From: Octopus bimaculoides
Lineage: Eukaryota
Reading direction: 5' to 3'
Length of the DNA: 64,000 bases
Assembly: GCF_001194135.2 (NCBI RefSeq)
Contig: NC_068993.1
Span: forward strand, 52,974,565-53,038,564
Part shown: positions 14,546 through 42,500 of the stretch, piece after piece
Numbering within the stretch: the stretch's first letter is position 1
How the letters are laid out: every line of letters starts with the position of its first letter
Made by a program: the position numbers and the translations under genes
Notes under the pieces: model-generated
What the model was told of the DNA's origin: nothing
What the model saw: the letters and a program-made list of their open reading frames with translations, nothing else
Database searches by the model: none

Positions 14546-16924
14546 ACAAGATAATGGTAGATTTCGTTCTTGAAATTCTTTTTATCGCTTTGTTGTCATC
14601 ATTTTAGTTTCGACACAAGGTCAAAACGTTTGGGGGAGGTTATAAGTCAATTACATTGACCCCAGTGCTCAACTGATGCTTATTTTGTCGATCTTGGTGG
14701 AATTTGAACTCAGAACATACAGACAAATGAAATGCTGCTAAGCATTTTGCCTGGCATGCTGATTCTACCAGTTCACCAACTTCTTTGTTATCATTATATT
14801 GCATGCACCTCTTTAACTGTTTGATTATATCAATTATAGTAGGATTGTCTTTATCATATCTTCTTGAAGTAACAATATTGCATCAGTTCCAACAAGATTT
14901 GACTTAGTTTTAAACCTCACTTGAGCTGTAGGACTCATAAGGTCAGGTTTTAACTCAGTTCCCATAGCATATAAGTGACTGAGATTACAACACTCCCTAC
15001 CCCTGGACAGGATGTCAATCCCTCACAGAGTTTTAACTTCCCAGCTAATGCTGGAACTCATTTACAGCTGAGTGGACTCTTTTTTAATCCAGTGGCTTTT
15101 CAAATCTTTTTCTCCTCTCTTTTATTTCTCTTTTACTTGTTTCAGTCATTTGACTGCGGCCATGCTGGAGCACCGCCTTACAATTTTTTTTTTTAAGGAG
15201 TTGTTATATCATTATTGTGATTACCATCATCATGTTAATATCCACTTTTCTATACTTGCATGGTTTAGACAGAACTTATTGAGGCAAATTTTCTGTGGCT
15301 GGATGTCCTGTCAATAACCCTCGCCTGTTTTACAAACAAGGTGATATTGCCCCATAGCTGGATGGATATGTTTTCCTGAAAGATTGGAAACAAATAACAC
15401 TGTTTGTGAGAAGGTTACACTTATTTACAATTACAATTTCAGCATCTAATTCCACCCTTCACTTTTCTGCCAAGTTCTGCCAGTGTTAATAAGTACCAGT
15501 TATATGCTGATGTCATTCCATTTGAGTATAACCCTTTTCTTATGACTTAGCTTACTGAAACAATAGGGTTTCTACATAGTTGCTCATTCTCCTAGAAATA
15601 ACAGTCAAAATGTCCTCAAACCACACCCTGCCATCTAAACAAAAGATATACCTAATACTGTAATTTGGGTTACAAATGCTTAAAAATTTATACCAAAGAG
15701 AACAAAAACAAGATGGTCATAAACAAAATGTGTTTGTTCACAAGATCAGGGTTGACTCGTAGCTAAAAAAACAAAAGCAAAAGATCAAAAATTATTTGCT
15801 GCCATAGTTTTTCACCCAATTCACATCCTGTTCTTGTTCCAGATGAATATTTATATATTTTCTGAAATTCAGGTGTGTTTTAGATGTCCTCTCTAATTAC
15901 CATATGAATGAGCCTAATTTCTGACACTCTTAAATATGCAGATTATATGGCATGATGATAGTGACGACGACAAAAATTACTCTTGTTTATATTTTTCCAA
16001 TGTAATGTTTAATGTTGAAGGAACAAGAAAACCAACATCCAACATAATTACATTGACACTCATGTATATATATATGTATGCATGCTAATGCATGACCCAC
16101 GTTGGGCTCCTCACTTGTATCATTATTGAGCCTGGAGCTTAACCATAGCCTATCCATCGCACTTACTTAGTGTTTACTCGTTGATCGGATCATCTGGATC
16201 CCTCGTCGTTATAACCGACAGAGTGTCACAATAGCTATAATATAGATGATAGGTGATTGAAATTGTTTGCAAGTGCTTGGTTGTGTGGTTAAGAAGGTTG
16301 CACATGGTTTCAGGTTCAGTCCCATTGTGCAGCATCTTGAGCAAGTGTCTACTAATATTACCCTGGGCTGACCAATGTCTTGTAATTGAATATGGGAAAT
16401 GAAAACCCATTTCGTGAGTGTGTGTGTGTATTTATGTCTCCTTGTCATGGCATTGCTCAATAGTTGTAAACAAGTGTCGCAACTGTACAAGTGATATTGT
16501 TCGTTTCCAGTCTTCCATGAAAATATGTCCAGCCATGGGAGAAACATTACCTTGCAAATAGGTGAAGGTCGGTAGTAAGAAGCATATCTGTGTGTGTGTG
16601 TGTGTGTGCGTGCATTCGTGTGTGTGTGTGAGTGCATGCATGTGTGTGTGTGTCTCCTTGTTTTGACATCATGTGATTGTTGTAAAGGAGGGTCACTATC
16701 ATACAAGCAGTGTTGCTCATTTGCCATATTTTGTGAGAACTCATCTGCTGATGGAGAAATATTACCTTACTTGGAAACAAGTGGAAGTTGACAATAAGGA
16801 CATTCAGTCACAGAAAGTCACCCTCATTAAACTCTGTCAAGACCCATGTAAGCATGATAAAGTGGATGGAACCCTTACCTTGCTCGACATATCTCCAAGA
16901 AACTGCTCAGAAATGTGCAAGATG

Positions 16925-18425: not shown

Positions 18426-20485
18426 GTAAGTTTCCTTTATGGATTTAATTTCACCTTCTTAACTCCATCCAGGATTGTGACAATGGGCTAGCCTAAGGGT
18501 AAATGTTATCTCATTGTAGTTTTAGATCAGGCGTGGACAACCTTTTTTGTGAAGCAGGCCACATGAGATATGGCTCATCATTAGATTGGCTCCAGTACTA
18601 AAAAAAATTCAAGGTAATTTTTCATTAGGCATGCCATTCAGAAAGTCCCCAAGGTCAACTTTGCCTTTCAACCTTTCAGGATCGATTAAATAAATGCCAG
18701 TTACACACTGGGGTTGATGTAATCAACTTAATCCCTTCCCCCAAATGTGAAGCCTTGTGCTTCCAGTAGAAAGGATTATTATTATTATGTCACATTTCTT
18801 ATTTCCTCATGATATATGAACTTACTTTATTTTGCTAATTTTATAACCTTAAGACTGACTTGGGGTGTGAGGCAGGATAATTCAAAAGAAAAATTCTTAT
18901 ACAAGTTTGGTTTTTTTCTTCTAATTTTAAATTTTCTATATTTTATAGCACATTAACAGGCAGGGAACTACCATCATTATAAGTAAATCCGATGACGACC
19001 TTGAGGTTAATGCTACAATGACCAGTGCTACATATGCTGACACTGGTAAGTTTACATGCACTTACAGAAGGACGCTGTGGCTGAGAGCAGATGTTTACAT
19101 TTACTTTAGAGGTAAGTACTAAATTGGTTTGTCATTCTGTTCCTAACTAACTCATCACTCTTCGTAATGGCCTATTCCACTGAGCTGGAGTGGTACACTC
19201 ACATTGCAGTTCCTACATGTTGTATTTGGAGGAAATTATTGTATATAATATGGCTTTAACTGTTCTATTATTTTCATGAGCACACTGTTTTGGTATTGAG
19301 AAGGTGATAATGATAATGAATGAAAATGACGATGATGATGATGAATTATTTTAGCTGACAAGAGAGATAAAGGTAATGAAATTCATGATTTTCATATCTT
19401 TCCCATGGATCATCATCATCATCATCGTCGTTTAACGTCCGCTTTCCATGCTAGCATGGGTTGGACGATTTGACTGAGGACTGGTGAAACCGGATGGCAA
19501 CACCAGGCTCCAATCCAATTTGGCAGAGTTTCTACAGCTGGATGCCCTTCCTAACGCCAACCACTCAGAGAGTGTAGTGGGTGCTTTTACGTGTCACCTG
19601 CACAAAAACGGCCACGCTTGAAATGGTGTTTTTTATGTGCCACCAGCACAAGAATCGGCAACGATCTCGCTCGAAAAACCTCATGTGTCACCTGCACAAG
19701 AGCCGGCCCAGGGGCGTCTATTTTAATAGAGTTGTAATGTGTTGTATCAGCAGGTTAATTCCTCACCATCTAGCGCTTGAGAACCTTCATGTGAGTCTGT
19801 CCTGTTTTCCTTCCTTCTTCCCGCTAGTCAAGGAGGCTCTGGAAAAGAACTGAACCTGAAACCATGGGGTTAGTAGAGAATTGATAGAATGATACAAAAT
19901 ACATGTCTTGTTGTGTTAGATTACCCCCAGATAGATGGATTTTACCTCCGATAGAGTATATTGTGATTGATTCCATTAACTCTGCTCTTCCTCTGTAGAT
20001 TTCTGGCCTGGTATCAGAGAAATTGTTGTTGTTGTTGTTGTTGTTGAGGAGACGGAGCAGCTGACAGAATCATTGGCACACCGAGAAAAATGCTTGGTGG
20101 CATTCTGTCCATCACTACATTCTGAGTTCAAATTCCACTGAGGTCAACTTTGCCTTTCTTCTTTTTGGTACCCAGTTGCACAATGGGATCGATGTAATCA
20201 ACTAGCCTCTTCCTCCCCCAAAAATTCAGGCCTTGTGCTTTTTATAGGAAGGATTATTATTATTATTATTCAGGTGGCAAGCTGACAGAATCATTAACTC
20301 AATGGACAAAATGCTTAGCGGTATTTCTCCCATTGCTACATTCTGGGTTCAAATTCTGCCGAGGTCGATTTTGCCTTTCATCATTTTGGGGTCGATAAAT
20401 TAAGTACCAGTGAAACACTGGATTTGATCTAAACAACTTACCTCCCGCCCCTACAATTTTAGGCCTTGTACCTTTAGTAGAAAGG

Positions 20486-20517
<32 letters not shown>

Positions 20518-23500
20518 GGTGTCAAGCTGGCAGAATTGTTAGCACACCAGACAAAATGCTTAGCGGCATTTTGTCTGTCTTCATGTTGTAAGTTCTGATT
20601 CAGCTGAGGTTGACTTTGCCTTTCATCCTTTTGGGATTGATAAAATAAAGTACCAGTTGAGCACTGGGGGAGATATAATCAACCAGTTCCCTCTTCCAAA
20701 ATTTTTTGGCCTAGTAGAAAGGATCATTATCATCATCACCATGGTGATGGATTGACAGAATGATTAAAATGTCAGACAATATGCCTTGCAGCACTTCTGA
20801 CTCTACAATCTGAAATCAAATCCGACTGAGATCAACTTTGCCCTTTCATGCTTTCAGGGTGGATAACATAAAGTATCAGTTGATTACTGAGGTTCGTGGT
20901 ATTCACTAACTCTTCTCCTCAACATTGTTGGCCTCATGCCTAAATCAGTAATCATTAATTTTTATTTATTGTTAGTTACTCTTTTTACATGCTCTTCCAT
21001 GTAATTCTTCAGCATATCATCCTGTACTGTTCCCCATGTTTTTTATGATTAATAAAGAAAAAAAATCATCATCGTCATCATCATCATCATCATCATCAAT
21101 ATTATTATTAGGCAGTGAGCTGGCAGAATGCTTAGCAGTATTTCATCCTTTACGTTCTGAGTTCAAATTCCACCAAAGTTGACTTTGCTTTTCATCCTTC
21201 CAGGGTCAATAAAATAAGTACCAGTTGAACATTATGTTTGATGTAATTGATTTATCCCCCTCCCCTGAAACTGCTTCTCTTGTGCTAAAATTTAAAACCC
21301 CAGGACAATTTTGCCTTTCGTCCTTTCGGGGTCAATAAATTAAGTACCAGTGAAACACTGAGGTCAATTAAACCATCTGTCCCCTCCCCAAAAATTTCAG
21401 GCCTTGTGCCAACAATAGAAAGGATTATTATTATTTACCTTTCATCCTTCTGGGGTCAATAAATTAAGTACCACTGAAAAACTGGGGTCAATGTAATTGA
21501 CAAATCCCCTCCTCCAGAATAGCTGCCCTTGTGGCAAAATTTGAAACCATTATTATTATTATTCATTAGTCTTATTTTTATCACGTTCTTTCATTGCTCA
21601 ACCAAGCACAGCTCTGTGTATCTTGGGTATGTGCTGTGGTTTGCTTTGGTGTTGCTATTTCTTGCTAATTTTTAGGATGTGTGCAGTACCTAGTAGTGCC
21701 ATTTTTTGTATGTAATATATATTTGTTATATTCATAAGTCCTGGTATTTTGGTTATGTATTTGTCTGTATTTTTTTTAACCATACCTAATGCACCTGTTG
21801 TTATCGGGATTGTTTCTGTTTTTCAGCTCCACATTCAAGTTATCTCTATTTCCAAATCTTTGCATTTTGAGAATTTTTTCCTTTCCTTTTAGAGATACAT
21901 TGTCAGCTTTTGGAATGGATACATCAATTAGAAGGCTTTTTTTTCTTGATAGTCTCTGACAACTATACCCAACGTCTTAGCCTTGATCTCTCTATCTGTG
22001 TATATTGGTATATCCTAGAGTATCATTGCTTTATTATCATTATTATTATTATAAATATTATTATTTATTTATTTATATTTCAGATCCAGATAACTTCTTT
22101 GTTGAAAGTATTATATTCAGTCATGTGGTCAGCCTTAAAACAGGATACTTCAGATGCCTAGTGACAGACCCTAATATCAAAGTGAGCCTACAGAAGCATG
22201 ACAAACTTGTTGAACTTAGCAAAAACCTCCAGTATGACCCAAAAATGGGTTTTGTAATTAAAAGACCAACAGTGCTGTACACTGGCAGTTTTACATGTAT
22301 TGGGGAACTCAACAATAAAACTCAAAAAGTAGCTGTGCACAGCACTTTTCAGGGTGAGTTGGTGTTATTTGTTGACTACTTTATATATTCAGTCTCTTAG
22401 ATTTCGATCCAAATAGTATCATGCCAGCCATAAACTAGAAGTAGGATCGAAAATTCTTATTGGTAACGTTGTCAAGTGTTTTGTACAAATTCAGTATTTG
22501 TATATTTCAAGCTATGCTACAAATACAACATTATTTTCCGTAGATACTGGTATGGTTGTGTGGTTAAGAAGATTGCTCTAAAGCCATGTGGTCTTGAGTT
22601 CAGTCCTACTGCATGGCATCTTGGGGAAATGTTTTTTACTATAATATGCAACCAAGTGAACACCCTCCATCAGGCATCTACCATGCTCTGAATGCCTTGC
22701 TTCCCTGGACAAGGATCCATTGAAACTCAACGTCTGGCAACTGACGTGGTAAACACCCACAAAATTATTAACCATCGTGCCAACAAACTTGAGCACCTTT
22801 TTGAATTCCATGTGTCTAACACACATGGGCATGTTACAAAGTCAAAAAATAGTACAGTTCCCATGATTTTCTGAAACATTTTTTTCACACTCAGAGTTGC
22901 TGAAGCATGAAACAAATTATCTGCATCAGTTGTTAGCTGCTGAGACATAGCATCCTTTAAAATCTCCATGCTTCCTGAAATTCACCAACACTACACCTGA
23001 TATCCCCTCACTCCATAAGCATCCACACATGTATATCATAACTCATACACTGTTCACTTTCCTGACATTTGTACATAATTCTATGTAATGTACATGCACT
23101 TTTGATAAGTTGTAGTGCACCTGAACACTGTACACAATAATTTCTTTATTATTATTATTAACCCAAAGCCAATCCAAGCCTTGTGAGTGGATTTAGTAGG
23201 CAGAAACTGAAAGGAGTTCATTGTGTGTGTGTGTGTGTGTGTGTGTTTATTCACATCATGCTCTTGGTATAAATGAGCATCGTCATCATACAAGTGTATT
23301 CCTTCATTTCCAGTCTTCCATGAAAACTTTTCCAGTCATTGGGAAATATTACCTTACTTAGAAACAGGCAAGATACAAAATTTGCCTCAAAGAATCCTAT
23401 CTGACCCATGCAAGCATGTAAAAGTGGAGGACATTAAAACAATGATGATATATGAATAATATTCCTAGTTATATAACTAACCAAAAAGACCATTATTCAT

Positions 23501-26500
23501 TAAAATACCCAGTCGATCGAGTTAATGCATATTACTATTAGAATATTGACTCTAAACCAAATACCAGGTAAGGAATAAACTTGTTGATCACACAGGTGCA
23601 ACTACATCTGCACTGTAGGTATTACAATAAACTCCATGTCTGAACATCATAAATACCACTTCATCACTTAGTAATAAGCATTGAGTATAGAGAGAGGTAT
23701 GAAATAGGAAAATATTTTCTTCAACATATGTATTCTTAGAAAATCTAAAATAAGTTAAAAACTCATTTAAAATAATTTCTTTTTAATGGAATGAAAACAC
23801 GAGAAATGAGAAGAGTAATTCATTAAGTCTCCTGTAACCATATTTCTGTTAAAATACTCTGCATTTGTTTCAATTCATTTTGGAGAATTTGGTAAAATAT
23901 TTTATCATTATTAATCTGTGGAGCTGACAGAATCGAATAAAGTGATTAGTAGCATTTTTATGGCTCTTTACATTCTGAGTTCAAATCGCAAGGCTAACTT
24001 TGCCTTTCATCATTTTGGGTTTGATAAAATAAAGTACTAGTCAAGTACTAAAGTCAGTATAATCAAGCACCCCCTTCCTAGTTGCTGGACTTATGCCAAA
24101 ATTTGATAAAAATTATTCATTTGGTGTTTAAAGAATTGAGCTGGTGGAATCATTAGCATGTTGTCAGTCAAAATGCTTACCAGCATTTCTTCCAAACCTT
24201 TATATTTTGAATCCAAATGTGAACATCACTTTTGCCTTTCATCCTTTTGGGATTAACAAAATAAAGTACCGGTGAAGTTCTAGGGTCAATATAATCAACT
24301 CCACGCGCGCACAGCAACATATATTACTGGCCTTGTGCCAAAATTTAAAACAATATTAATTGTTGTTTGAAGGAAAGTTTTAATTAATTTAGATTTCTTT
24401 GTATCATTTGAACCAGAGGTAACCTCAGGTGGGTTTGTATCAAAACAGCTAATTGATTAATTGTGAATTTCTTCTTTTTTTTTTTTTTTTTTTCTCTCCT
24501 CTTAGATAATCAAGAATTGACTCCTGAAATTATTGTACAAAGAACCAAGTATATGGTTAATGAAACAATCGAAATGAATTGCAGAGTTGAAGTTAACAAA
24601 CAGAGTGCGATACATATGGAATGGATTTTACCAAGTAATAAAGTAAGTAGCTTAAAAAACTTATTTCTATTATTCAGTTTTTAATCTATTATTTAACATC
24701 GTCATTGTTCTTATTATTACAGGGCAAAGTCTCTTCAATGGTTTGAAAAAACGTTTCAGTTTTACTTTTAATAACTTTATATTTATTATGTTTCTTATCT
24801 TTATTTATTTTTTTCCAGATTTTGCAAAACCTAAAGCACACACAAAAGGAAGAAAAAGAAATTAGATTCTAAAAAACTGAGTAATGCTTGGAGTTCTGCC
24901 TTGCACTGGTTTTAATCCCGATGCAAGGAGCTTAATCACTCAAGCTGACTGAGTGGTTTGTAAGAGAGTCAGACAATAAAACTCATTTTTCCAGGTGTCT
25001 GGACTGAACCCAAATTACAATGGTCACAGTAAATGGATATCCAATTAAAAATATGCAACATTTTGTTTTAGAGTTATTTGGACATTTAGTATTTGAAACA
25101 TTTTCCCTCTTCTGACAAAAGTAATGTTTCCTACATGAACATGTGGCCTTCATGTTAGCCTATCAATGAGAATCAATACCAATTTTTTTTTTTGAATTAT
25201 ACCCATTCTTGTTAGTTTGCTTATTTCTTCTAGTCAGTTTATCATCCAGTTAATCTCTCATCCACAAGTTCTGAAATTCAATACAGTCTATAATCGCTAA
25301 AAATTGGACTAAAGTTTATATATTTGCTCTGTTTTTAAAGATCACATTATATTATTATTTTAGTCAAGCAAAAAATTTGCTTAACTTTAGCTTTCTTTTT
25401 TATTTCACAAAATTCTTAAACTTTCAACAGTTTATAATATTGTTATATGATATGATGGCACCTGGAGAATATGATGTCATTAGAAGGTCATTTAAATGTG
25501 GTCTGGGAAATATCTGTGCTTTAGCTCGTGGCGGGGGATAAATAATACAAGCCAACGAAAGTGTCTCTAAGTGGTTACTGAGCATGTTAGAAACAGCAGC
25601 CAGATCTCCCTCAAATCAATCAAAACTCCACTATCTTCAACAAAGTTACATTCAAATAATTTGGCTTTTGACAGTCTTAAAAAGATGAGATGATCAATGC
25701 TGGAATGTTTTTGATTATAGATTTACTCAGTCAAGATTGATTTGAATCTAAACTACAAGTACATTTTTTTTTTTTTTTTTCATTCTAAGTACAAGGCCTG
25801 AAATTTTCTGGGAAGGGGCCAGTTGATTAGATCGACCTCAGTACACAACTAATACTTAATTTATCGACCCTGAAAGGGTGAAAGGCAAAGTTATATTCCC
25901 TGTTAACCTTCCTCTGATATCCCACCATAGTTAATTTTACCTTTCATCCTTTCATCGACAAAGTAACTAGTCAAGTACTAGGGTCAGTTTTATCAACTAG
26001 CTCCTTCCTTTCAAAACTGTTGGCCTTATTCCTAGATTAGAAACAATTTTTTATTTCCAATTTTATGTCTGTCATTTAAATAACATTTATTTCATTCTTT
26101 CTTTTTCTTTTTTCTTTTTTTGTATCTTTCTCCTCTTCCTTTAGGTAATTGTGGTTTGCAAATCTGATCAGGTAAAGTGCTGTTCCTGTCAGCAGTCAAT
26201 CCTTCAAAACTGCATTTTGTCATGCTCAACTATTTATTGTCGTAGTAGGTAGCAACATGGTGCAGAGTGTAGTCACCTAACAAGCAGAGAAACACACTTC
26301 ATTCATGTTGCTATTACCCTTCACAAAGACATAAATGGTACCAAGAAAAAAAAAAAAAAATTCTCCTCTCTTATGCTTCATGTCTTTATGAGAAATTGTT
26401 ATGAGGTACAATAAATTTTCAAGTGGGTTAGGTTCTAGATACTTACTTAGTCTCTCATCACTTCATATTTATTGTGTTTTGTTCACATACTAAACTATAC

Positions 26501-29500
26501 TTGGGTAAAAATACTTCCTGTTTAATTATGAAATCATAATTAATACTTTTGAGAAGTAAATGATCAAGTGCTGAAGATTGTGGTGAAATGTTTCTCAAGA
26601 TATTTCAATATTACTAACATTTAGATTACAGTCATTGTCTTCTCAATACTTATGTGTCAGGTGTCTGGTACAGTGGGAAATTGGTGACCAGCTTTTCCTG
26701 TGTTAGAATCATTTAAGTTGCTACCAAAGTCAAAGCCTCAGAGAAAGGGATGAATGCTACAATTCTGTCTCCTTTCCTATTCTGTCTTTGGCAAGATATT
26801 TCACTCTCTTTAAGGCTAGAAGTCTAAATATTTAAAAATTTTCTGCATGAAAACTGCATGCATATTTAACTCTTAGGTGTAACAAATATATTATATATTT
26901 GTGAGTGTTATAGTGTACAGCTGGGTAGAAAGGATTTAAGATATGAGGCAGGTAGGTAGAATACAAATATATATATATAGGTTTAGTAATACAAACAGGA
27001 AAATAGAACTCAAAACACATATATTTTTTAATTTAACCAGCACAAGTTACAAACTAATTCAAGAGCTGAGAATTTCATGTATTGCCAATGCATAAAAGTT
27101 TCCATCCTTGAGTCAAGGCTCCGAAAGGGGTTTCAGAGAGTAGCATCCCTGCCTTCCTGAACAAGTTTGCCACCACATTTCTTAAAAATCATGATAGAGG
27201 CCTTGGTCTCAGGTCCACTCGTGTCTAGAAACTGAGGTGGGAGGTAAGCAAGGGCATGCTCCCCATAGAAAATCTAGCCCCCAAAAAGCCTCATGATAGC
27301 AAAGGAGAATGGTCAACAGCCAGCCCAAAAGTTGGGGTGGGCTGCATTTGCCTACCTTGGTTGCTATGGCATTGATGTAGATTTGACCACCCCTGTTAAC
27401 AGGGACAAAACCCGGATTTAAAACACTGGATGGTGATGATGTATATTGTAGCTTAAATCTGCCCTATTGGGCAGCTCTTAAGCTAGCTCCTGTGGAGGGC
27501 TCTTCATTAGGCTTTGGGCCCAACAATGAGACTTCATGCATTGAGTACATGTTAAATTTTATTAAAGTTAAACAATATTTTTCAAGCAATGAACAATTTT
27601 CATTAAAACAATGATATAATTTGTTGACTTGGAATTTATTGCAAAGCTGCATGATAAACAGCAGTACCACCACAATCACCACCACTTCTACCATACACAC
27701 ACCATTCAGCCTTTTTGTGATGGTAACAGGGTGATAGTAATAGTATGAGCTGTAGCTGTGATAGAGGCAGAGGCAGCGGTGGTGGTTGTGGTAGCTGCAG
27801 TGGTCAGAGATGATGGTGAGAGTAAGTGATGTGAAAGACAGTGGTGATGGTGATGGAGGGGAAGGCGGCCAAGTCAAAGGTATTAATGGTGGTGGCATCA
27901 GAAGTTTGAATAGTGTGTATATGGCAGATGTGGTGGCGATGGTGGTAGTACTAAGAAAATGTATATATGGGTGTTCTGTTGCATTAAAAGAATATATTAA
28001 GATATGTACAGCTGGGTAGAGAGAATATGTAATGATATATGGGTGCACAATTATGTACAAAGTTCTGTGCATTTAAGTAAAACATAAATTAACTTAGTTA
28101 TAGGGTTTGTTGTATTGTAGCTGTGTTGTCTTGACTAACTGATCTCTGTAGCTTTGCTGACAACAAGTCTGTTGTACTGCAGTCATGTTGTCATAGTTTC
28201 TATTGTGTGGCAAAATAATTGCACTATCATTATATTGTCACCTTTCTAATTGCATTGGTATAACATTTTCCATGTGTATGCATGTTAATTAGAAACTGTC
28301 CTTAGTCTATTTTCTGTTTCCACATCTACTTTCTCTTCGTTTTCACATCTATTGTCTTTTTTATTTCCACATCTATTGTCTCCTTTCATTTCCACATCTA
28401 CATGTATGTGTGTGTATATATGTATATATATATATATATATATACATACACACAAAACATTGGACTGACTCCTGTGCAGGTGGCATGTAAAAAACACCAT
28501 TTGAGCGTGGCCGTTGCCAGTAGCGCCTGACTGGCCCTCGTGCCGGTGGCATGTAAAAAACACCCACTACACTCTCGGAGTGGTTGGCGTTAGGAAGGGC
28601 ATCCAGCTATAGAAGCTCTGCCAGATCAGATTGTAGTCTGGTGTAGCCATCTGGTTCGCCAGTCCCCAGTCAAATCGTCCAACCCATGCTAGCATGAAAA
28701 GCGGACATTAAATGATGATGACACACGCGCACGCACACACACACACACACAATGCTTCTGTACAGTTTCCATCTATCAGTTTCATTGAGTGGCTGTAGTA
28801 AAACACATTAGAACTCGAAACAACATGGTTACTAAGATAATTCTCTAACCACACAGTTATGCATTGTATATCATAATTTGGATTTACTGAGCTACTTCAC
28901 TAATACTTTCAGTAAATCATGCATATAAAATCTAAATGTGTGGATTGTATTATGTATATGTGTAATAATTTATATAATTACACATGTATAAATATGTTTG
29001 TCACAGACACAGAGACACTATACTCAAGTTTTATTGTAGTCTCTCTGTCATGTACTGATGGTTTCTACTTTTGTAATCTTATTGTCCTTACATTATTTTC
29101 ATCCTTGATCCTATAAATTGAGTAATAATCTTTTAAATCAAACACACTGACACTTTAATCCTGTGAACCCTTTATATGGTTTTTTTCCTGGCCATTTAAC
29201 TGTTTGTTGCACTGTCATTCAAATCTATATAATGCAATAACATTTTCACTATTTCACTTCATTTGCTTTCTTGTGTCACACTTTCAATCTCATTTTCTGA
29301 ATTTCAACATCTTTTTAAGCCTTCTATTTTCATTTCTTCTATTCTTAATTAGTACTTGATTTTTTTGCATTTTAATTTACTCACAAAATAATACTAAATT
29401 CTGCATGTTTGTTCACAACATGGCTACTGAATTAATATGTGGTGGTGATGATGATGGTGTTGTTTTTGTTTAAGACTTTAATTTAAAGTGAGATGTTAGT

Positions 29501-32500
29501 GTTATATGTTATATATCACAGGATTGCTCTCTAAATTACTTTGTTCTAGAATTAGAAATAAAGCCTATTATTACCTCCTTGATTGATATAATTTATTGGG
29601 TACATTGATAAATGTCTTGTTATTTATATCTCTCCATTTATGTTTCCAAAGGCTCCATCAGGGTATGACATAAACTCAACCTCGAAATTACTAGATTTTG
29701 TTCTTTAAGCTGATATGTCACTGATTTACTCTTGAGCACTTTGGAACTGAAATAGAACAAATACAAGGCTGTATAAGCTATAAACTTTTTAAATGTATCA
29801 AATCGGTTAATGAAAAATAAATATTCACTGAACATCGTAAATTTAAAGGCATCTTCTTTCGTTATCATCAACAAAAGCACTTTTCACTTGATTCAATCCC
29901 TCATTTCAAATTTAGTAATTTAATGGTAACATTAGAATATGATGATCAGTTTATCTTGTTTTGATGATAGATGAATATACTCTTTATTTTGGTCATTTAG
30001 GTAAGGCCCTTACAGTTTGCTGCTGTTTTGAGGGAAAATAGATCTTGTGCATTATTGCAAAATCTGTACCAATTTCATTCATGGATAGGTAGTGTGAGTA
30101 TTACTTTGGAGCAACTAGAAGACATTTAACACTTAATGTATCCAGTGACAATGACGAAAAAAAAAAGCAAGGGCACTGAAGTGTCACCTTGAAGTATTTC
30201 TACAATTACATCTTTGTTTCATTGACAGGGGTCAGTGGATTTTGTGTTTGTGTAAAGTACTTTTAATGATATCAATTACCTGTTGAATTATGCCATACAG
30301 CTATAGTATCTTATTGCTACCTCAGTCATACCTATGTCTATAAACATATATAGAGAGAAAAAGAGATAGACAGACAGACACACATGCACACACACACATA
30401 CATACATACATACGAAAGAAAAGACCATAGTAACCTCAGACAATGGAATGCAAAAGTTCGTTAGAGTAAAGTACTCTCTTTCTCTTTGGTTCATAGGATT
30501 ACGCTCAAGGTAGCTCTGTCATTCACATGTGCCAGCCTTGCTACATTCACCCATCTTTTCATGAAACATTCATTAGACAAACCTTCCCTCTCTACTCTCA
30601 CTTTCATTTTCAAGTGATACTTGAAAAAGTTGATGAGTGATTGACCAGAGAGGAAAGTGTTTGTTTCTAGGCCTTTCAAATGCATCCACCATACACATTC
30701 TTTCGCTATAGCCACTAGTACAATGAAAACAGCTCTTCCTTCCCATTTGAAGGAAGGAGGCAGAGCAATATTAATGATAAACCAACTCGTGCCACACATG
30801 ACAACAGTTGTTCAACAGAAGCCCACAAGTAGGAAATGGTTTGACACTGTAGAATGGTTTCGTCACTCTGACCACATCTCAGGCAGGTTGGCCCAGTTTT
30901 CTAGAGCCATACCTGTAGAACTTATCACAAACGGGTAGTACTTTTTGATAGCACTGCCAGGCCAGGGATCTCTGGCAGTTGTCCATAGGTCTCAGCCCGA
31001 AAGTTGTCCTGAAAAGGTAGGTCAGGTATTGCAATGAATCGTCAAATTATTAATAACTGTAGTCACTTTCTAAAATTATTTACTGTGGCAGTACCAACAA
31101 CAGGTTTAGGAGCAGGAAAATAATAACATAAACTTACTGTAAAAAAAAACAATACTTCTTAAATTTTTCCATCAAATTATGAATAATAAAAATCATAAAA
31201 TATGGAATTGTAAATGTTGCATGTAACCCCCTGGTTCCATGATGCAAATTTCCTCTTTTAAAGGCTATAAGTCGAAACCTTCCATCAAAATTTTATGTTG
31301 ATTTATATTTGAAATATCACTTAGCAGTGACAGTTATTTTACTAAATTCTTCAATATTTTTAAAATTAATTGGAACAAAGGTAGTTTATTTCAAGAGAAA
31401 TATGATAACAATAGGGTTAAAATATTTTTTTAAATATTCATTTTAATACCTCCACTAATTTCAGACTTGGCCTTTTGTCACGAACTTTCAACCACATATA
31501 TTTTGTTGATCTTTTCTATAATGAAAAAATCATTCAAATATTATTACTAGAATAGCCATGAGTTTTATTGTGTTATCGCATTGAGAGAAGATGGTGAGCT
31601 GGCAGAGTCATTAGCACAGTGGACAAAATGCTTATTGGTATCTCTTCTGACTTTACATTTCAAATTCCACCAGGGTCAACTTCGTCTTTCATTCCTTTTG
31701 TGGTCCATAAAATAAGTGCTAGTTGAGCACTTGTATCAATGTAATTAACTAATCCCTTCTCCCTAAAAAAAATTTCAAGTTTTGTGCTTATAGCAGAAAG
31801 AATTATTATTATATTGAGAGCTTATGTATGGAAGCCATATTATCTTGTAAAATATATGCATTTGATGTGAAGATCTTAGAACTAATGACTAAAAAACAAA
31901 GGATCAAATTTTTGTTTTTGTTGTTCCTTCCTATTTTAGTAACCCAATGCTTTGTTTTCTTCCATTCTAGGTTTGTTTACCCGAAGATGATAATGATGTA
32001 AATATTGGAATCTTAGATTTTAGTACATTGCTTCTACAGCTTTCTTCACTTCTTTTTTAATTTTAATTTTCATATTTTTCACTAACTTTTGTTTTTGTTT
32101 TTTTTTTTGTTCTTAACCTAATTTCTTTTCTTTTTGCTTTCTTTTCTGTTTATCATGCTAATTTTTCTGAAATTATCATTTCTTTATGTAAATCCCCAAC
32201 CACAACCATATATATATATATATACAGGAAAATGAAGAATAACACAGAATGCCAAACTGGAAGCATATTTTAATAAAGATTTCTAACTGGCTTTCATTGC
32301 GAAGCAAATTTTCAAGAAGGAGAATGAAAATGTTTTTTACAAAGAAGTACAAAATGAAGAAAATAATATATAAAAAAATAAATATACCAATACATTATAT
32401 TGTCTTTGAGCTTTTGAAGTTCAATGGTAATTCATGTATATAATGGTTGGAAAAATAAGGATGCATGAGAATTGAGAGTTGTGTTAGGTTTTAAAAAAGG

Positions 32501-35500
32501 GTTAANNNNNNNNNNNNNNNNNNNNNNNNNNNNNNNNNNNNNNNNNNNNNNNNNNNNNNNNNNNNNNNNNNNNNNNNNNNNNNNNNNNNNNNNNNNNNNN
32601 NNNNNNNNNNNNNNNNNNNNNNNNNNNNNNNNNNNNNNNNNNNNNNNNNNNNNNNNNNNNNNNNNNNNNNNNNNNNNNNNNNNNNNNNNNNNNNNNNNNN
32701 NNNNNNNNNGTTGAAAAAGAGTTCATAACTCCAACTAAAAACATTTGTCTCCCCTTACACACACTTCCTGTTTTGACACCACACTTCCTGCTTAACACAA
32801 ACTTTTAACCCTTTTTTAAAACCTAACACAACTCTCAATTCTCATGCATCCTTATTTTTCCAACCATTATATACATGAACTACCATTGAACTTCAAAAGC
32901 TCAAAGACAATATAATGTATTGGTATATTTATTTTTTTATATATTATTTTCTTCATTTTGTACTTCTTTGTAAAAAACATTTTCATTCTCCTTCTTGAAA
33001 ATTTGCTTCGCAATGAAAGCCAGTTAGAAATCTTTATTAAAATATGCTTCCAGTTTAGCATTCTGCCTTATTCTTCATTTTCCTATTATTTCTTCACGTG
33101 CGGTTAATTCAACCCCACTATTTACTGACATATATATATATATATATATATTGCACATTTTCTAAATGGATATTTTACATTCAACAAAATCTCTTCACTC
33201 TCACAGAGGTATCAAGCCCATGGTTTGATACCTCTCTCTCTTTCTCTCTCTCTCTGCCTCTCTCCTTTTTTCCTTGTATGTGTATGATATATATGTGTGT
33301 GTATTTAATTATAGGATTCAATAGAATCTAGTCACATCAACGCATGATACCAGAAGTGGCTAGGTACAATTTATATATTTGCATATGTATGTATATGCGC
33401 ATTTATGTATGTATAAGTGGACCTAATATAAATGAAAATATATTGCCAAATATCTTCTTTGGCCTCAAGCTGACCAATGAATTACAAGAGGAATTTTCAG
33501 AGGGAAAATTATGTAGATGTTGGCATTTTATGGTGTCACTTGTCACTCTCTGAACAAAATGCGATGTTTACACTCCTCGTTAACATCACAACCTATATCG
33601 CTCTCTATTTTCAAAGACCAAGTAGTAATTAAAAAAAAAAATTAGTCAGTCAGTCACAAGTTTAAATGTTACTGCAGCTCTGGCCCCAGAACAAGACACT
33701 TCATTCTGATTGCCCAAAATATGCCACTGATAAAGTTAGGTTCAATTGCTGTTTTTCACTTGTGTAGTAAGTTGGTAGTATGAAGAGCATTTAGCATTAA
33801 AAACAATTGCTCCAACAACAAAACCACCCCACTTATATCATTCTGGAGAAATTAATGTATGTCATTTTTGAACTTACTGTTGAGAATGTTTCTAATCAAT
33901 TGACATTAATTTGAACTTGTCACAACAGTATAGTATGAACACAGTGTGACAGTCAGTGATAAATGCAGGTATGACCGTGTGGTTAAGAAGTTCACTTATG
34001 AACCACACAACTTAGGGTTTGTTCTAAGGCTGGTGTTTTCTATTATGGCCTCAGGGTCACCAATACTCTATGAGTGGAAGGCTTAGAGTATTCTTACACT
34101 TGAATATTTTTGTTTTGGCTTTGAGCCTACTAATAACACTTTTTCTCCAAATGCTGGGGATTTTTCCCACCTTGTATTTGATAAAGGGAAGCTTTCCCAA
34201 ATATAAAAGAAATATTAAACAACCTATGTGGTTTGATAGAATATCTTGTCTTTGTCTTTATTTCTTGGCATCATCTAACATCTTTTGCCTAATTTCTCAC
34301 CATCATTGCTTAAAGGTCTTCTTAAGAAATATTCATATCAATCTTTTGTTGTATTTTTCTCTCTTTTATAGTAATTTCTATTTAACAATATTAATTCTGT
34401 TTATTAATCTTTTATCTATTTCAACCTCTTAATCTGCCTAATTATTTCTGCTTGCTATCTTTCGGCAATATTAATCCTTTAACATTTAAACCAGTCATAT
34501 AATGCTCAAATATTTTATTAGTTCAAACTTGTGAGATCCAGCTTCTCATACCTACCAGACAAGGTTATTCTAAAAATAAACAATCATATCATAAAAATTT
34601 CAAAGCTGTGAGATAATGCATGATTAATTCAAAACAATGCAAATAAATAAGCATTATATTAAGCTGGATAATCTGAATGTTAAAGGGTTGAAGAATATTT
34701 CTGAATTCATATCTTTGATGCCTACCAAATATAGATTGATTTTTAAATGAAAAGAAAATCAAGTAATTTATTATGTAATTGTCTAACAGTTTATGCATTT
34801 ATATTGTTAAATTATTCATGTGTATATTTTTCAACTTTTTTTCTTTTTGCATGACACTAATATTTTCATTTTCTTGTCATAATCTTTCCCAAAGTTCAAC
34901 TTCATATGAAGTTCTTTGCATTCTTTTTCTATCAATTTCAATGTCTAACTGAGCACTGCAGTTTCTATCTTATCTCACTTCTCATAGAATTCTCTAATCT
35001 GTTTCAAATAATCTTCGCATTTCAGCTTCATTCATTCACATACACAGCAATGTTAAGTTAATCTAATTCACAGAATACTAACTAATTTGTAAATGAAAGT
35101 TTGAATGTGTGTGTGTGTGTGTACATACATACATATATATATATTTTTATATAGGCATTGATTTATTTGCTTGTATTATCAGCTTTAATTACCCATCTTC
35201 CATGATGATATGGGTTGGACAGTTTGACAAGAATCTAGTAGGCCCAAGGTCTGCATCATGCTGCAATGTTGTGTGTGTGTGTGTGTGTGTGTGTCTCCCC
35301 CCCCCCCCACACACACACAGCATCACTTCACAACCAATGGTAGTATCTTTAGTCCCTGTAACCTAGCGGTTTTGCAAAGGGGACTCATAGAATGAGTACT
35401 AGGCTTACAAAAAATAAGACCTGGGGCTGATTTGCTCGACTAAAGGCAGTACTCCAGCATGGCTGCAGTCAAATGACTGAAACAGATAAAAGAATGTGTG

Positions 35501-35509
35501 TATAAATAA

Positions 35510-35544
<35 letters not shown>

Positions 35545-38500
35545 GATGAGAATGTGTGTCTGTCTGTCTATATGAACCCATAAAACTTGAGAACTACACA
35601 AGAGGAACCAAGTGTAAAGCTAATACATATTGGATGAAAAGGGTTGACAGTAACTTCAAAGGCATTGTCAACCTCTTTTTCCTTGAAAAGTATTAAAAAA
35701 CATGTACTCTACTAAAATGTCTTATGTAATCCTTCAGTTTAATGTTAAATTGTTTTTATGTATAAGCTTAATATCTGTATTGATTTAAAAGATTGTTTAT
35801 ATTAATGCAGACATAGAAGTAATTTATTTATTATAAAATATAATAAAATAGATTATCTTTGCATGTTTCAAGTTATAAAACAATTGTTGTGGTATGAATT
35901 TTCAAATGCTTAAATAAATTTTTATCATACTATTCTCTTGTCATTTATAACTTTATATATATATATGTATATAGTCAAATACTTTTGGCATTAAATGAGG
36001 TGAGGTACTTTCATTAGTGTTCCTTATACATGGGCAATGAAAAAAAAGAAATGTTCTTAGTTCTGTTTCTTTTGTATTATTTAAATTTTTCGTCATAACT
36101 GAAATGTATTAGTCTCTTTTGCAGACATCCCATCGGGTTCGTGTATCAACACCTAAACGAGAACACCGCAGAGGTATCGATGTATTTTATGCCAAAATTT
36201 ACATTCGAAGAGCTAATCTGAATGACAGTGGTATATATGTATGTAACGTCAGCAGTTCTAGCTCTATGAGTACTGATGTACACATTTCAGTCTACGGTAT
36301 GTATACAACAAAACTTGCAATTTGATTGGATGTTGATGTTTTGACATTGTTGATCTGAATAGGAATTAATCATCATTTCACAAATTTAATGTATGGAAGA
36401 GTGAAATGCTAATTAAAGAATGATATTGATTTTATGTTTATCTTCTGATAAAGGACAGCTATAAGGTTAAGAAGTTCATATATTGTGTTTGCGTGTACCA
36501 TTGTCTTGACATGTGATGGTTGTATACAAGCATGAATGTCATACAAGCGATGTTGTTTGTTTCTAGCCTTCAACGAAAAATATGTCTGGCCATGGAGACA
36601 TATTTCCTTCCTTGGGAACAGGTAAAGTTTGATGACAGGAAAGGAATCCAGCCAAAGAAAATCTGCCTCAACAAATTCCATCTGACTCATACAGGCATGG
36701 AAAGGTGGATGTAAAATGACAATGATGAATTTAAATTGTAGATCATTGTGAAGGCATGTTGCCAAATTGTTAGGATGATTTCAATTCCCAGGTGGTGCAG
36801 TGGATAGCATTCTTGAGTAAATTCCTTCATTTTAAGTTGCTTCAGTCTACTTAACTGTGAATTCCAGTAATAGCTGAAAAGTTAGCCCTTCTCAGGTGTC
36901 CACTTCGTGAGGGGAGTGTTGTAATCTCAACCACTAATAATGTGGTTTGTGACATACCTAAGTTGGTGTCCCCAACCTGTACATTGGCTGCTGGTTTCAG
37001 TGGTCAGGTGTTTGGTTGTGCTCCTGACCATGCTCACGAATGTGCTCAGTTCTGTGCTTCTGCTCTTGCTCATTCTTGCCCTCTCTTTGGCCGACAATAG
37101 TGCTGCTTTCCGTATTGTGCCTGGCACCAATAGCTGAGCAGAACTGTGCCATGACTGGTGGGTTGGGCACAGTGGAATTACTACACTGATAGGGACCATT
37201 GCACCCAAGTGGGATCCAGACTTACTACATAGGATCTTGTTGATCAGCTGAGGTTTGTGTGAAAGGGTGGTTTTCATTCTCTTCTGCTTTGCAATTATCA
37301 CTGTAGGTTCATGCCTCTTGACCCTACATGACCAGTAAATTCTCAATATACTGCCACTGTCACCTCATCCATTTGCATATGTGTATCCTTGCCTCAGATA
37401 AAATGAAAATTAAATAAAATTTCATATTTTCATTTGTAGAAAAAGAATTTGTATATTTAAACAACTCTGAAAAATTGGTTCGAGTGAGTGAAGATAAAGA
37501 CAGGGTGTATCTGACAGCTAACTATGTCTCCTTTCGTAAACCTAATATAACATGGTTCAAAAATAGTGAGATAATCATGGAGGGTATAAAATATGAAATC
37601 CGGTGAGTGAATTTTTTAATTTTTTTTTGCTAATATATAACATGTCTGTCAACTTAATTATTAATGTGAACTTTGTTTTTACATCAATTTCTCATTTAGG
37701 CACAAAATCAGATTTATATGACTTAAGGAATAAAGAATTTGGGTGATAGAGACCTTGAATAAGGTTACAGGCATTGACATTGTATTCTAAGTCATGTAAA
37801 AAATTATGGATATCAACCTAGTGAATCTCTCATCAATACCAAGGTTAATGGGATGAAGTCTATGCTTCACTGAGGAGGTCTAATAAGACTGAAATATGCC
37901 AATAGTCATCCCTTTTATTTGTGAAAAATTATTAAATATAATTCTAATTCCAGTTTCCTTTTCCCTAACCCTTTTGTTTTTAATAGTCACCTTTCTAATA
38001 TATTGTTTTTATATTGCTGCTTGTCTTAAGTATCAGGTTTTAAAAAAAAGTAGTGAGGTCAAGGCAGTGCTCCAGTATGGCAGTAGTCCAGTAACTGAAA
38101 CAAGAGAAAGATAAAATAATTCAGCAAAGCATAATGACTTAAAGAATCCACTTTAATGCTTTGTTGTTATTTTTTCTCCTTTTGATCATCAGAATTTGTC
38201 CATCCTGTTGCTAGACTCTTACTTTGTCATTTTAGATAGATTAACTGAACTGAAAATGATACTTCTGAAAATATTTTCTTTTATTTCTGTTTTGATAAAT
38301 ATTTTTACGGGCACATGCATGGCTATGTGTATGGTTTTGGAGCCCATCAGCTTAGTTATCACTAAGTTGTCTTAGTTATTAACTTAGTTGTCTTGAGTTC
38401 TATTTCATTGTGTGACATCTTGGGCAAATTTCTGTTGTGGCCTTGACTGATAAATGCCTTGTGAGTGAAACTAGTTGGCCAAAATTGTATGAAAGCCTGC

Positions 38501-39597: not shown

Positions 39598-42500
39598 GTC
39601 ATCATCTTGATCATCATTTAATGTCTGTTTTTCATGCTAGCATGGATTGGACAGTTTGACAGGAAATGGTAAGCTAGAAGACTGTGTAGCTTCACTGTCT
39701 GCTTTGGCATGGTTTTTATGGCTAGGTACCCTTCCTAACACTAACCACTTTACATAGTGACACCAGCACCCACAAGGTCTATTTTAGCATGATTTTTACT
39801 ACTGGGTGCTGCTCATGTTTTCAGATAGTCCATATAAAAATGTCACATTCCTTTTGGGGTTCAATATTCTTATGACGGAACCTGCAGCTATGACATCAGA
39901 TCCTCCACTACATTACCAAATTTTTTTTTTTTTTTCTTGCTCAGATTCTACAATATAGACTTCCTATTGCAAAGAGATCTGAATTAAAACTTTCCATCAA
40001 AATTTTATTTTAATTCATGTTCCAAACACCAGATTAATAATGATAAAGTTATTTTACTAAAGTTTTCATTATCTTCAAAATTAATTGAATCAGAGGGAAT
40101 GTTTTAATAGAAATTTGATTATGAACATGTTAAAAATCCTAATTTTTCTGGATGTTTGTTTTGCATTGTTATATCAATGTTCCTATAGATAGTAAGATTA
40201 GTGAGGTAATAGTATAAAATACTATTTTTCTCTTACAGGTAAACCAATAATTCAACTAGATACTATACCAGCAAAGGATTTTTTCATGGTTGATCGTAAA
40301 GTAACATTGATTTGTAATGTGTCATCAAACCTTGATGATGAAATGGTATGGATGTGGCAGGCATGTGATCCATTTCACTGTTCTTCAAACCCAGCAGCAT
40401 GGTCAGTAGTCAACAAAACTACAATAGAAAATGGACTAACTACACAGAGTGAGTAAAGACAATAGCTGAATTTCTATAATGCACATTTGTACACAGATAG
40501 AGGCATATCACTGTGGTCTCAACCACATGGCTTTAGGTGCAGTCTAACAGCACATCACCTTGGACAACTTACTTCTGTAATGACCATTTCTCTCACCCAG
40601 CTAAAGAGTGGGTGGGCTATCACAGAAGAGACTTGCCATGAACCACTTTACCCACCCATGTATAACATGGGGTTGCACTACTCCTTCTACTCAACCTGCC
40701 CCTCTGATTCTCTCACTAACCACAACCACCACCTCTGACGCTACTTCTCACTTGCTTCATATTATCCTCTTCTCTAACAGTGTCACTACATTTTCTCAAA
40801 AATAAACCTGTGCAACTAAAAATAAGCATATGCAACTCCAATGAGGACTGCCTTCGACCCTAACAAACCAAAAGTTAAGAGTACTGTAATTTTGCCATAA
40901 CAAACTGAGATAATTTGCTGTAACAACAATTTATCCAAATACTTTGATTCCTTTACATTTATTTGAAAAGGGAAATTATTCCCAAAATATTATAGGAATA
41001 ATAAATAGATAAATAAATAAAACAGCCCAAGTAAAATAATATATCTTTATTTTTGACATTGATTCATTGATATTACCTTACATATTTTTGATTAACTCCT
41101 CACCCACAACTTTGTTCAAATGTTTTTACAAACATTTATCTCAAACTAATATAAATAATTATTGTTTATTTTAGATAATCCAGAGATTGTTACATTCAAA
41201 AAATACACTGTGCTGAATGTAACAGCTTTAGTTGGAGGTCAATATAAATGTCAAGCAACCAATAGACAAGGAATAAGTGAAAAAATAGTAAATTTCTCCC
41301 TTAGTGGTAAGTGTCTATATATGTATTGTCTGTTTACTATCTCCTACTAAACCATAGATAAACAGCTATTCTGAAACTGGTAGCTCACAATGAAAAGCCT
41401 TGGCGATATGATTAAGGAGTTCACTTTCCAACAATATTGTTTCAATTTCAGCAGTACAAACAGCACTTGATCAAGTGTTTTCTATGATATCCCCAGGCTG
41501 ACCGATGCTTTGTGAGTGAATTTGAGAGATGGAGACTCCTTAGAAACCTGCTGCACACACCTGCATGTGTGGTGTGTGCATCTTTCTGTTTGTCTCTCAC
41601 TACCTGACAACTGATGTTGGTTTGTTCACATCCCCATAGTGTAGTGATTCAGCAAAATGAGACTAATAGAATAAGAGCCAGGTTTAAAAATCTCAAAATA
41701 ATTACTATGGTCTTCCTAACCACATGGTTTCAGATTCAGTTCCACTGTGTGCCATCTTGGGCTCCATGTTTTCAACTATAGCCCCAGGCCAACCGAAGCT
41801 TTGTAAGTGGATTTGGTAAATGGAAATAGAAAAAGCCTGTTGTATATGTGTGTGAATGTGTGCATACAAATATGTTTCTGACACCTTGTTTTGACATTGC
41901 ATCATATTTGTAAACAAGTGTTAGTGCTGCTCATTTCTAATATTCTACGGAATCATGTCTAGCCACAGGGAAATATTACCTTGTTTGAAAAAAAGGTGAG
42001 TGTTGGCAACAGGAAGGCATCCAGCTGTAGAAAAATCTACCTCTCTAAACTTAATCTGACCCATGGAGAAGTTGACGTTAAGAAGATGATGATGATGATG
42101 CTACAGCAGCAAAATCACTTTGGTTCAGTCAAATAAAACAATAGACAAGAAAAGTTAACCTTTTTTGAAATGTTATAATTGTTGAGACAGATTTGTATTA
42201 ATATTGTATTTCTGTTTCAGACATTGAAAATGGCTTTATGTTTACAACAAGTGTAAAGTCACCAGTTGAAGGCGATGAAATTTTCTTGACATGCAGTGCT
42301 AATTTGTGGAAATATTCTGACCTCACATTGATGTTTGAAAGATTATGGGATACTGATGTCTATTCTAAGTTCCCATCAGTCAATAGATCATATGGGCGAT
42401 ATAACATATCTCAGTAAGTTATTGTAATGTTGCTTATAGAAAAAAAAGGATTAAAGAAATTTTAAATAAATAAATTGTCCCCACTTATAAAACATTATTC

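Follow-up and report, generated by a model that had tools for sequence, protein, structure and literature searches.

Can two stretches of 27 nucleotides (nt) inside a long intron, each holding a single cysteine codon, be genuine exons of a receptor tyrosine kinase, and if so, how would they alter its ectodomain? This question arises in a 64,000-nt window of the Octopus bimaculoides genome (NC_068993.1, positions 52,974,565 to 53,038,564 of the forward strand), which contains the gene named 'vascular endothelial growth factor receptor 1' (VEGFR 1) in RefSeq. The third immunoglobulin (Ig) domain of the encoded seven-Ig VEGFR (Ig3, or D3) is divided by an 11,482-nt phase-0 intron, in which a first-pass annotation had recognised two candidate microexons, here called A and B, and had proposed that they act as a combinatorial switch. 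We consider it highly probable that A and B are conserved, regulated cassette microexons which, together with an alternative acceptor further downstream, generate graded lengths of the C-C' loop of D3, with B used either alone or with A.

The elements of the Ig3 region are listed below, numbered from the first nucleotide of the window (a slash marks a splice junction).

24506-24642, plus strand: upstream Ig3 exon, constitutive, 137 nt, strands A to C; ends ...WILPSNK in phase 0, donor AAA/GTAAGT; the same in the RefSeq O. bimaculoides isoforms
24643-36124, plus strand: Ig3-splitting intron, 11,482 nt, phase 0; contains both microexons, repeats resembling short interspersed nuclear elements (SINE-like repeats) and a 204-N assembly gap
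26090-26144, plus strand: polypyrimidine tract and 3' splice site of microexon A; 55 nt with 5 purines, ends TTTAG, near-identical in O. sinensis
26145-26171, plus strand: microexon A, 27 nt, GTAATTGTGGTTTGCAAATCTGATCAG, encoding VIVVCKSDQ; alternative cassette, annotated solely with B, in RefSeq X1 and X2
26172-26235, plus strand: donor of microexon A, GTAAAG (no G at +5), and the intron 3' of it; elements in common with Argonauta are GTAAA-TGCTG and AACTGCAT
31945-31970, plus strand: upstream flank and 3' splice site of microexon B, CAATGCTTTGTTTTCTTCCATTCTAG; conserved relative to Argonauta, one UGC at -23
31971-31997, plus strand: microexon B, 27 nt, GTTTGTTTACCCGAAGATGATAATGAT, encoding VCLPEDDND; alternative cassette, annotated alone or with A, in RefSeq X1-X4
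31998-32040, plus strand: donor of microexon B, GAT/GTAAAT (no G at -1, no G at +5), and conserved flank GTAAATAT...ATTTTA..ACA.TGCTTCT; among the top collinear conserved stretches relative to Argonauta
36113-36124, plus strand: 12-nt extension by an alternative 3' splice site, ttag/TCTCTTTTGCAG, adding SLLQ before TSHRV; RefSeq X1, X3 and X5 of both Octopus species
36125-36296, plus strand: downstream Ig3 exon, constitutive, 172 nt, strands C' to G, TSHRVRVS...DSGIYVC...HISVY; the Argonauta exon is also 172 nt

The downstream Ig3 exon terminates at 36296, not 36297, and the acceptor side directly 5' of microexon B is CCATTCTAG, which ends ccattctag. The coordinates, lengths, peptides and splice sites originally proposed for A and B proved correct to the base. 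The same held for the intron of about 11.5 kb in phase 0, for the Ig numbering, which is right by the gene model, and for the >40-nt polypyrimidine tract ahead of A, which is the 55-nt tract listed above. Both microexons are a multiple of three in length, free of stop codons and bounded by canonical AG...GT, so that they have the length and frame of cassette microexons.

RefSeq holds six isoforms of the gene in each of O. bimaculoides (X1-X6: XP_014782180, -182, -183, -184, -185 and -186) and O. sinensis (XP_029643820 to -824 and XP_036364285), with an identical Ig3 pattern in the two species.

X1, 1345 amino acids (aa): A, B and SLLQ
X2, 1341 aa: A and B (XP_014782182.1)
X3, 1336 aa: B and SLLQ
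X4, 1332 aa: B
X5, 1327 aa: SLLQ
X6, 1323 aa: none of the three (XP_014782186.1)

The O. bimaculoides isoform peptides match both 27-mers letter for letter, and the product that had been predicted for joint inclusion of A and B is exactly X2. Inclusion and skipping products are both annotated in two species which, at the level of annotation, makes A and B real, alternatively included coding microexons of a cephalopod VEGFR. As the RefSeq models describe the same locus and the same exons as found here, the microexons themselves were already known through annotation of this gene; literature searches for VEGFR isoforms or microexons of cephalopods turned up no publication. Across the six variants, 0, 4, 9, 13, 18 or 22 residues are inserted between strand C and strand C' (TSHRVRVS) of D3, and the SLLQ acceptor doubles the count of D3 variants. 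Of the switch foreseen in the first-pass annotation, with states 0, A, B and A+B, the states 0, B and A+B are annotated; an A-only isoform is absent from the six models of either Octopus species, and the SLLQ acceptor had been missed. This pattern suggests that inclusion is hierarchical, with A entering the transcript only when B is also in.

The gene itself lies on the plus strand at 18301-56301. Our 24-exon model encodes Ig1-Ig7, one transmembrane segment and a split tyrosine kinase with a kinase insert, and corresponds to isoform X6 with one constitutive 30-nt exon as the sole difference.

42831-42860, plus strand: constitutive 30-nt exon in a phase-2 intron inside Ig6; in RefSeq

The Argonauta counterpart of this Ig6 exon is likewise 30 nt (L002 38790-38819). 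When an 822-aa query from the gene model was used in a protein search, it retrieved VEGFR 1 of O. sinensis, O. vulgaris and Argonauta hians, in a cluster that also holds the O. bimaculoides proteins. Pfam returned PK_Tyr_Ser-Thr (1.4e-87) and Ig families for the encoded protein, with the VEGFR-1-like Ig family PF21339 scoring 34.4 bits against a cut-off of 27. A D2-D4 profile searched against the PDB gave VEGFR-1 5T89 (E=2e-58) and VEGFR-2 3V2A (8e-56) as top matches, and Foldseek with an AlphaFold model of Ig3 found its best folds in the VEGFR-2 D2-3 structures 2X1W and 2X1X, and also in VEGFR-1 D1-6. Taken together, these searches place the protein and its D3 with the VEGFRs, and its predicted domain layout and modelled D2-D3 resemblance are those of a class V (VEGFR-type) receptor tyrosine kinase.

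How well are the two exons conserved? In O. sinensis, A reads VIVVCKADQ (L001 59427-59453) and B reads VCLPEDDND (L001 66968-66994), with flanks almost the same as in the window. Argonauta hians, an incirrate octopod of another family than Octopus, provides the informative comparison. When the Argonauta protein was mapped on its locus (L002), 28 exons were found, and those of the Ig3 region measure 137, 27, 27 and 172 nt, with the lengths and phases seen in Octopus. The homologue of A (27 nt, L002 26074-26100) encodes EVKVGHHDQ and that of B (27 nt, L002 30214-30240) encodes VITNGLPND, giving peptide identities with Octopus of 4/9 and 3/9, respectively. The intron is mostly unalignable between the two genera, and the sole collinear BLAST match is B with its flanks; the B flanks are 67-70% identical, compared with ~61% for the constitutive Ig3 exons and 54-57% for constitutive splice-site flanks. 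Microsatellites swamped a local-alignment scan against Argonauta run without masking, and ranks were taken after simple repeats had been masked: the B windows then came 3rd-5th of 491 and A came 34th. What A shares with Argonauta is ...GAYCAG/GTAAA-TGCTG and the downstream AACTGCAT, that is, only splice sites and short motifs. A degenerate B-exon pattern scanned against metagenome contigs gave no matches.

The donor sites carry a second conserved feature. Using a position weight matrix (PWM) built from the gene's own splice sites, including 23 constitutive donors of which 22 have a G at +5, we scored the donors of A and B at 2.8 and 5.7 bits, below all 23 constitutive donors (minimum 6.3), while their acceptors fell in the middle of the gene's range. 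In Octopus, a +5 residue other than G is found in both microexon donors but in only 1/24 constitutive ones (Fisher p=0.009), and in Argonauta in 2/2 and 4/25, respectively (p=0.043). The donor of A is GTAAAG, GTAAAG and GTAAAC in the three octopods, and that of B is GTAAAT in 3/3. With strong polypyrimidine acceptors, and with donors that lack +5G and are kept as such in three octopod species, both microexons bear the mark typical of regulated exons as opposed to constitutive ones.

Directly 3' of A, the sequence is GTAAAGTGCTGTTCCTG in Octopus (26172-26190) and GTAAAC(TGC)3TG followed by a T-run in Argonauta (L002 26101-26120). More generally, UGCU/CUG-type motifs lie just 3' of both microexons in all three octopod species, with (CUG)4 after Argonauta A. 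Motifs of this kind are bound by Muscleblind and CELF proteins, and it is only a guess that those near the microexons might be regulator binding sites. A UGC motif, which in SRRM4/eMIC-type neural microexons lies a short way upstream of the 3' splice site, was found once upstream of B in Octopus, at -23, and not within 47 nt upstream of A; at the position aligned to the UGC of Octopus B, Argonauta has TGT, and a TGC sits farther upstream.

Where in the receptor would the inserted residues lie? Profile alignment with human VEGFR-1 sets the insertion point at ~K272/N273, within the C-C' loop of D3. The structure of VEGFR-1 with VEGF-A shows D3 making contact through N259 and R261-M264 (strand C), V278 and R280 (strand C'), Q284, N290 and F292 (bioRxiv 10.1101/102822), so that the insert is flanked by two ligand-contacting strands. 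Judging from Ig topology, it would sit at the tip of the C-C' hairpin, away from D2 and towards D4, adjoining the contact residues without being among them. AlphaFold 2 (AF2) models of the Ig3 isoforms, which the first-pass annotation had named as a check, keep the Ig fold in both cases. With A+B, the mean predicted local distance difference test score (pLDDT) is 87.9, all canonical strands are kept, V-V-C of A forms a short strand and the insert scores ~67-72; with B only, the mean is 90.1, the canonical strands are again kept and the insert scores ~69. The models thus suggest that the inserts lengthen the C-C' hairpin loop and leave the Ig fold intact.

Taken with the isoforms, this outlines how the system may work. 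Alternative splicing yields six annotated ectodomain variants, with no insert, with B or with A and B, each with or without SLLQ. In the A+B form of Octopus, the Cys of A and that of B, spaced as C-x5-C, would probably form a local disulfide, and the B-only form would expose an unpaired extracellular Cys. The output, which is the least certain step, would most likely be a changed surface or geometry of D3, beside the ligand-binding C and C' strands or towards D4.

A further observation concerns the junction into the downstream Ig3 exon (24640-24642 and 31992-31997 joined with 36113 or 36125), over which an N-x-T/S sequon is formed in 6/6 Octopus isoforms. It reads NKT with no insert, NKS with SLLQ, NDT with B or A+B, and NDS when B or A+B is combined with SLLQ. 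At the same Ig3 junction, Argonauta has no sequon.

Several observations weigh against the reading of A and B as conserved, regulated cassettes. The RefSeq XP_ entries are automated model proteins, so that the support for the isoforms is at the level of annotation, and only the skip form appears in the annotation of O. vulgaris and in four Logan assemblies from a decapodiform-like cephalopod. The introns of O. bimaculoides and O. sinensis are ~92% identical throughout, the same as the exons, and this species pair therefore cannot discriminate conservation. The first-pass annotation had pointed to conserved islands in orthologous introns as a check: against Argonauta, B with its flanks stands above background, but the flanks of A are no more conserved than the rest of the intron (93rd percentile). 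The Argonauta microexons have no Cys, with Gly and Ile at the positions concerned, and a single Cys is left over in the annotated B-only isoform, in which the canonical D3 pair (C30 and C108 of the modelled fragment) is otherwise engaged. From these last two points it follows that a disulfide is not obligatory.

In its full form, the original proposal held that splicing switches freely among 0, A, B and A+B, that A+B makes a disulfide-closed C-x5-C loop, and that inclusion of a single exon leaves a free Cys, leading to covalent dimers and to tuning of VEGF binding. We regard this as unlikely in its entirety. The A+B and B-only isoforms that it calls for are annotated; ligand is bound by D2-D3, and VEGF contacts of human VEGFR-1 fall on the C and C' strands that flank the insert. 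There is also a precedent in FGFRs, in which an unpaired Cys in an Ig loop leads to covalent, ligand-independent dimers. Each microexon encodes one Cys in Octopus, and both are kept in O. sinensis, in line with the paired-Cys loop that had been proposed, yet neither is present in Argonauta. On the sequences compared, the Cys pair is Octopus-specific, with the two residues either both present or both absent, a distribution that fits a disulfide pair but involves two lineages only. Since Argonauta retains the exons without Cys, the pair cannot be the conserved reason for their existence. Moreover, A-only is annotated in neither Octopus species, and the insert appears to sit at the hairpin tip rather than among the contact residues. 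Ligand tuning, disulfide formation and covalent dimerisation may nevertheless each be effects of the microexons. The Ig5 motif W-x-W-Q-A-C-x4-C (40239-40448), which had been taken to mirror the Ig3 loop, lends nothing specific to Ig3: it is constitutive and recurs as WQACEPYNC in Argonauta, as WQACTPGNC in the decapodiform-like cephalopod and likewise in the alignment consensus. This Cys loop is an ancestral constitutive feature and no parallel to the microexons.

Beyond octopods, the four Logan transcript assemblies encode a decapodiform-like cephalopod VEGFR that is 38% identical over Ig2-5, and 4/4 have the skip form. An exhaustive search of representatives returned mostly giant Ig proteins, with the decapodiform-like Logan transcript P0035, a skip form, as the nearest VEGFR. 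Counted from the Trp of strand C into the strand-C' region, 34 VEGFR-like proteins have 20-32 residues, the exceptions being octopods (+18), Mya arenaria (+10) and Argopecten irradians (+31). In the last of these, a scallop, RefSeq isoforms of a VEGFR1-like protein (XP_069130205 to -209) vary at the same site, as skip, +19 aa and +19+12 aa. At the scallop locus (L003 13026-20116), the same phase-0 Ig3 intron contains in-frame cassettes of 57 nt (14923-14979) and 36 nt (16463-16498). The intron follows W-x-Y-x-S-K-E, and the annotated states are none, the first cassette, or the first with the second. The scallop cassettes differ from those of Octopus in length, are unrelated to them in sequence and have no Cys, and the first contains an N-S-T sequon; the two systems may be homologous or convergent. 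The isoform sets of Mya, Tubulanus, Branchiostoma, Aplysia, Patella and Ornithodoros show no variation at the Ig3 site. Among molluscs, the use of the mid-Ig3 intron for cassette exons therefore appears to be old or recurrent, without being general. In O. sinensis (L001 1-1218), Argonauta (L002 1-1191) and the scallop (L003 1-983), and also in O. vulgaris, the upstream neighbour of the VEGFR gene is a UMP1/POMP-family gene in head-to-head orientation, a microsynteny that supports the orthology of the molluscan VEGFR genes.

A bolder reading would connect the scallop with the cysteines. According to this, the mid-D3 intron is an old or recurrent cassette site in molluscan VEGFRs, seen in octopods and a scallop, in which the Octopus pair has gained matched cysteines; A+B would then be a disulfide-stapled loop, B alone would present a free thiol and form covalent, possibly ligand-independent dimers, and splicing would set the activation state of the receptor in an invertebrate whose circulation is closed and lined by endothelium. 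As a whole, we think this quite improbable.

Could A and B instead be neutral splicing noise, that is, low-level by-products of a long intron that were picked up by annotation pipelines and have no selected role? The fast divergence of both peptides between Octopus and Argonauta would be expected under this explanation, as would the lower-confidence loop that AF2 gives to the insert and the several annotations and transcript assemblies that carry the skip form only. However, the 27+27 lengths, the phase, the open frame and the splice sites are all kept between two incirrate families, the intron on either side of B shows higher conservation than the constitutive exons next to it, the suboptimal donors have been retained across species, and the scallop places two cassette exons in the homologous intron. 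We consequently judge noise to be very unlikely, and return to the reading of A and B as regulated cassettes.

A role in recursive splicing, in which the sites would serve the stepwise removal of the 11.5-kb intron as recursive-splicing exons (RS-exons), is less probable still, indeed highly improbable. Its attraction lies in the start of A, AG/GTAATT, which rebuilds a 5' splice site: in Octopus, the rebuilt AAA/GTAATT scores 5.2 bits with a crude PWM, against 2.8 for A's own donor, and this could be part of the reason for the lesser use of A. Yet A and B sit in annotated mature coding sequences, A of Argonauta starts GAAGTT and offers no GT, and in B the GT is a Val codon followed by a poor 5' splice site (3.3-4.4 bits); the constitutive exon at 40239 also starts AG/GTAAAC. 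With both exons in coding sequences, an Argonauta A that begins with GA and weak rebuilt sites, the RS-exon class was rejected.

A further rival is chance. Polypyrimidine-AG and GT sites are common in an AT-rich intron, and stop-free 27-mers between them could be accidental and never spliced in. Within the intron, 325 AG...GT candidates of 9-60 nt are in frame and free of stops, and only A and B pass when their own scores are taken as thresholds, which makes the selection circular. The same thresholds applied to the whole window gave 11 passes on the plus strand and 3 on the minus strand; of the former, 5/11 involve real exons, namely A, B, the 30-nt exon at 42831-42860, which scores best, and two real acceptors. 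The remaining passes correspond to ~1 false candidate per 11.5 kb, so that from the window alone the case for A and B stands only weakly above chance. The donors of both are weaker than every constitutive donor, and a SINE-like repeat lies 90-160 nt upstream of each, as an accidental origin would also allow. What decides the matter lies outside the window, in the annotated isoforms and in conservation across species: RefSeq isoforms of two Octopus species contain both peptides letter for letter, and the Argonauta model has 27-nt positional homologues in the same phase. As far as annotation allows, these refute chance pseudo-exons, which we hold to be extremely improbable.

Finally, a mutually exclusive pair in the manner of FGFR IIIb/IIIc, which the equal 27-nt lengths had suggested to the first-pass annotation, has practically no chance of being right, as the annotated isoforms X1 and X2 hold both exons, a skip form exists and A and B share no sequence similarity.

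An origin of the exons in transposable elements was also considered and rejected. Copies of a SINE-like repeat lie at 25787-26056 and 31585-31812, upstream of A and B, with further copies of the family at ~18642-18785, 20046-20701, 21124-21511 and 23995-24300. The copies stop 90-160 nt upstream and leave the microexons uncovered.

How do these cassettes compare with known systems? FGFR1-3 have mutually exclusive, homologous IIIb and IIIc exons of ~145 nt that replace half of the third Ig domain. As in the octopus VEGFR, it is Ig domain 3 of a receptor tyrosine kinase that splicing varies, and with it a ligand-binding domain; in octopus, by contrast, unrelated 27-nt cassettes are added to a loop and no exon is replaced. 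No splicing variation of the D3 ligand-binding domain is known for vertebrate VEGFRs. The NCAM VASE exon (PMC2116347) is, like A and B, a microexon of at most 30 nt (30 bp, between exons 7 and 8) in an Ig-splitting intron, that of Ig4, and alters a domain loop; its developmental regulation and its effect on neurite outgrowth were shown experimentally (PMC2116347). It differs in being a single exon without Cys, in an adhesion molecule rather than a receptor tyrosine kinase. In type IIa receptor protein tyrosine phosphatases (PTPdelta, PTPsigma and LAR), the meA and meB inserts are likewise small, in frame, placed in or beside Ig loops and used in several combinations, and they set the ligand choice of the ectodomain, with structures showing that they touch ligands directly (PMC4423211, PMC4437028). 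These are neuronal phosphatases, with inserts in Ig2 and the Ig2-Ig3 linker, whereas the octopus insert adjoins contact residues as judged from sequence and models. The octopus cassettes are not a new kind of system.

What is new is the cross-species anatomy, comprising the 27+27 arrangement, the retention of weak donors and the conservation of the flanks of B, together with the hierarchy of B and A-with-B, the Octopus-specific Cys pair and the scallop parallel. The exon architecture of the variants is common to two incirrate octopod families. The closed, endothelium-lined circulation of cephalopods evolved independently of that of vertebrates, with vegfr marking endothelial cells and vegf found in octopus hemocytes (PMC9712504), and an octopod receptor with six D3 variants would offer a new way into the tuning of VEGF signalling in a convergent circulation. 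The practical value is modest today because the exons are already in RefSeq, but real microexons evidently can be recovered from a reading of raw sequence alone.

Three minor observations concern the gene and its relatives. In O. vulgaris, the VEGFR gene extends over >100 kb. Between microexon B and the downstream Ig3 exon, the window contains a 172-nt inverted duplicate (32226-32397 and 32913-33084, 98% identical) around the N run at 32506-32709 (204 N), which is probably an assembly artefact. The decapodiform-like transcripts P0035, P0183 and P0185 differ by 6 aa immediately before the transmembrane segment, reading VIVG-K-MGRNE or VIVG-SSYAGAE-MGRNE, a difference that points to a further small event of alternative splicing in the VEGFRs of cephalopods.

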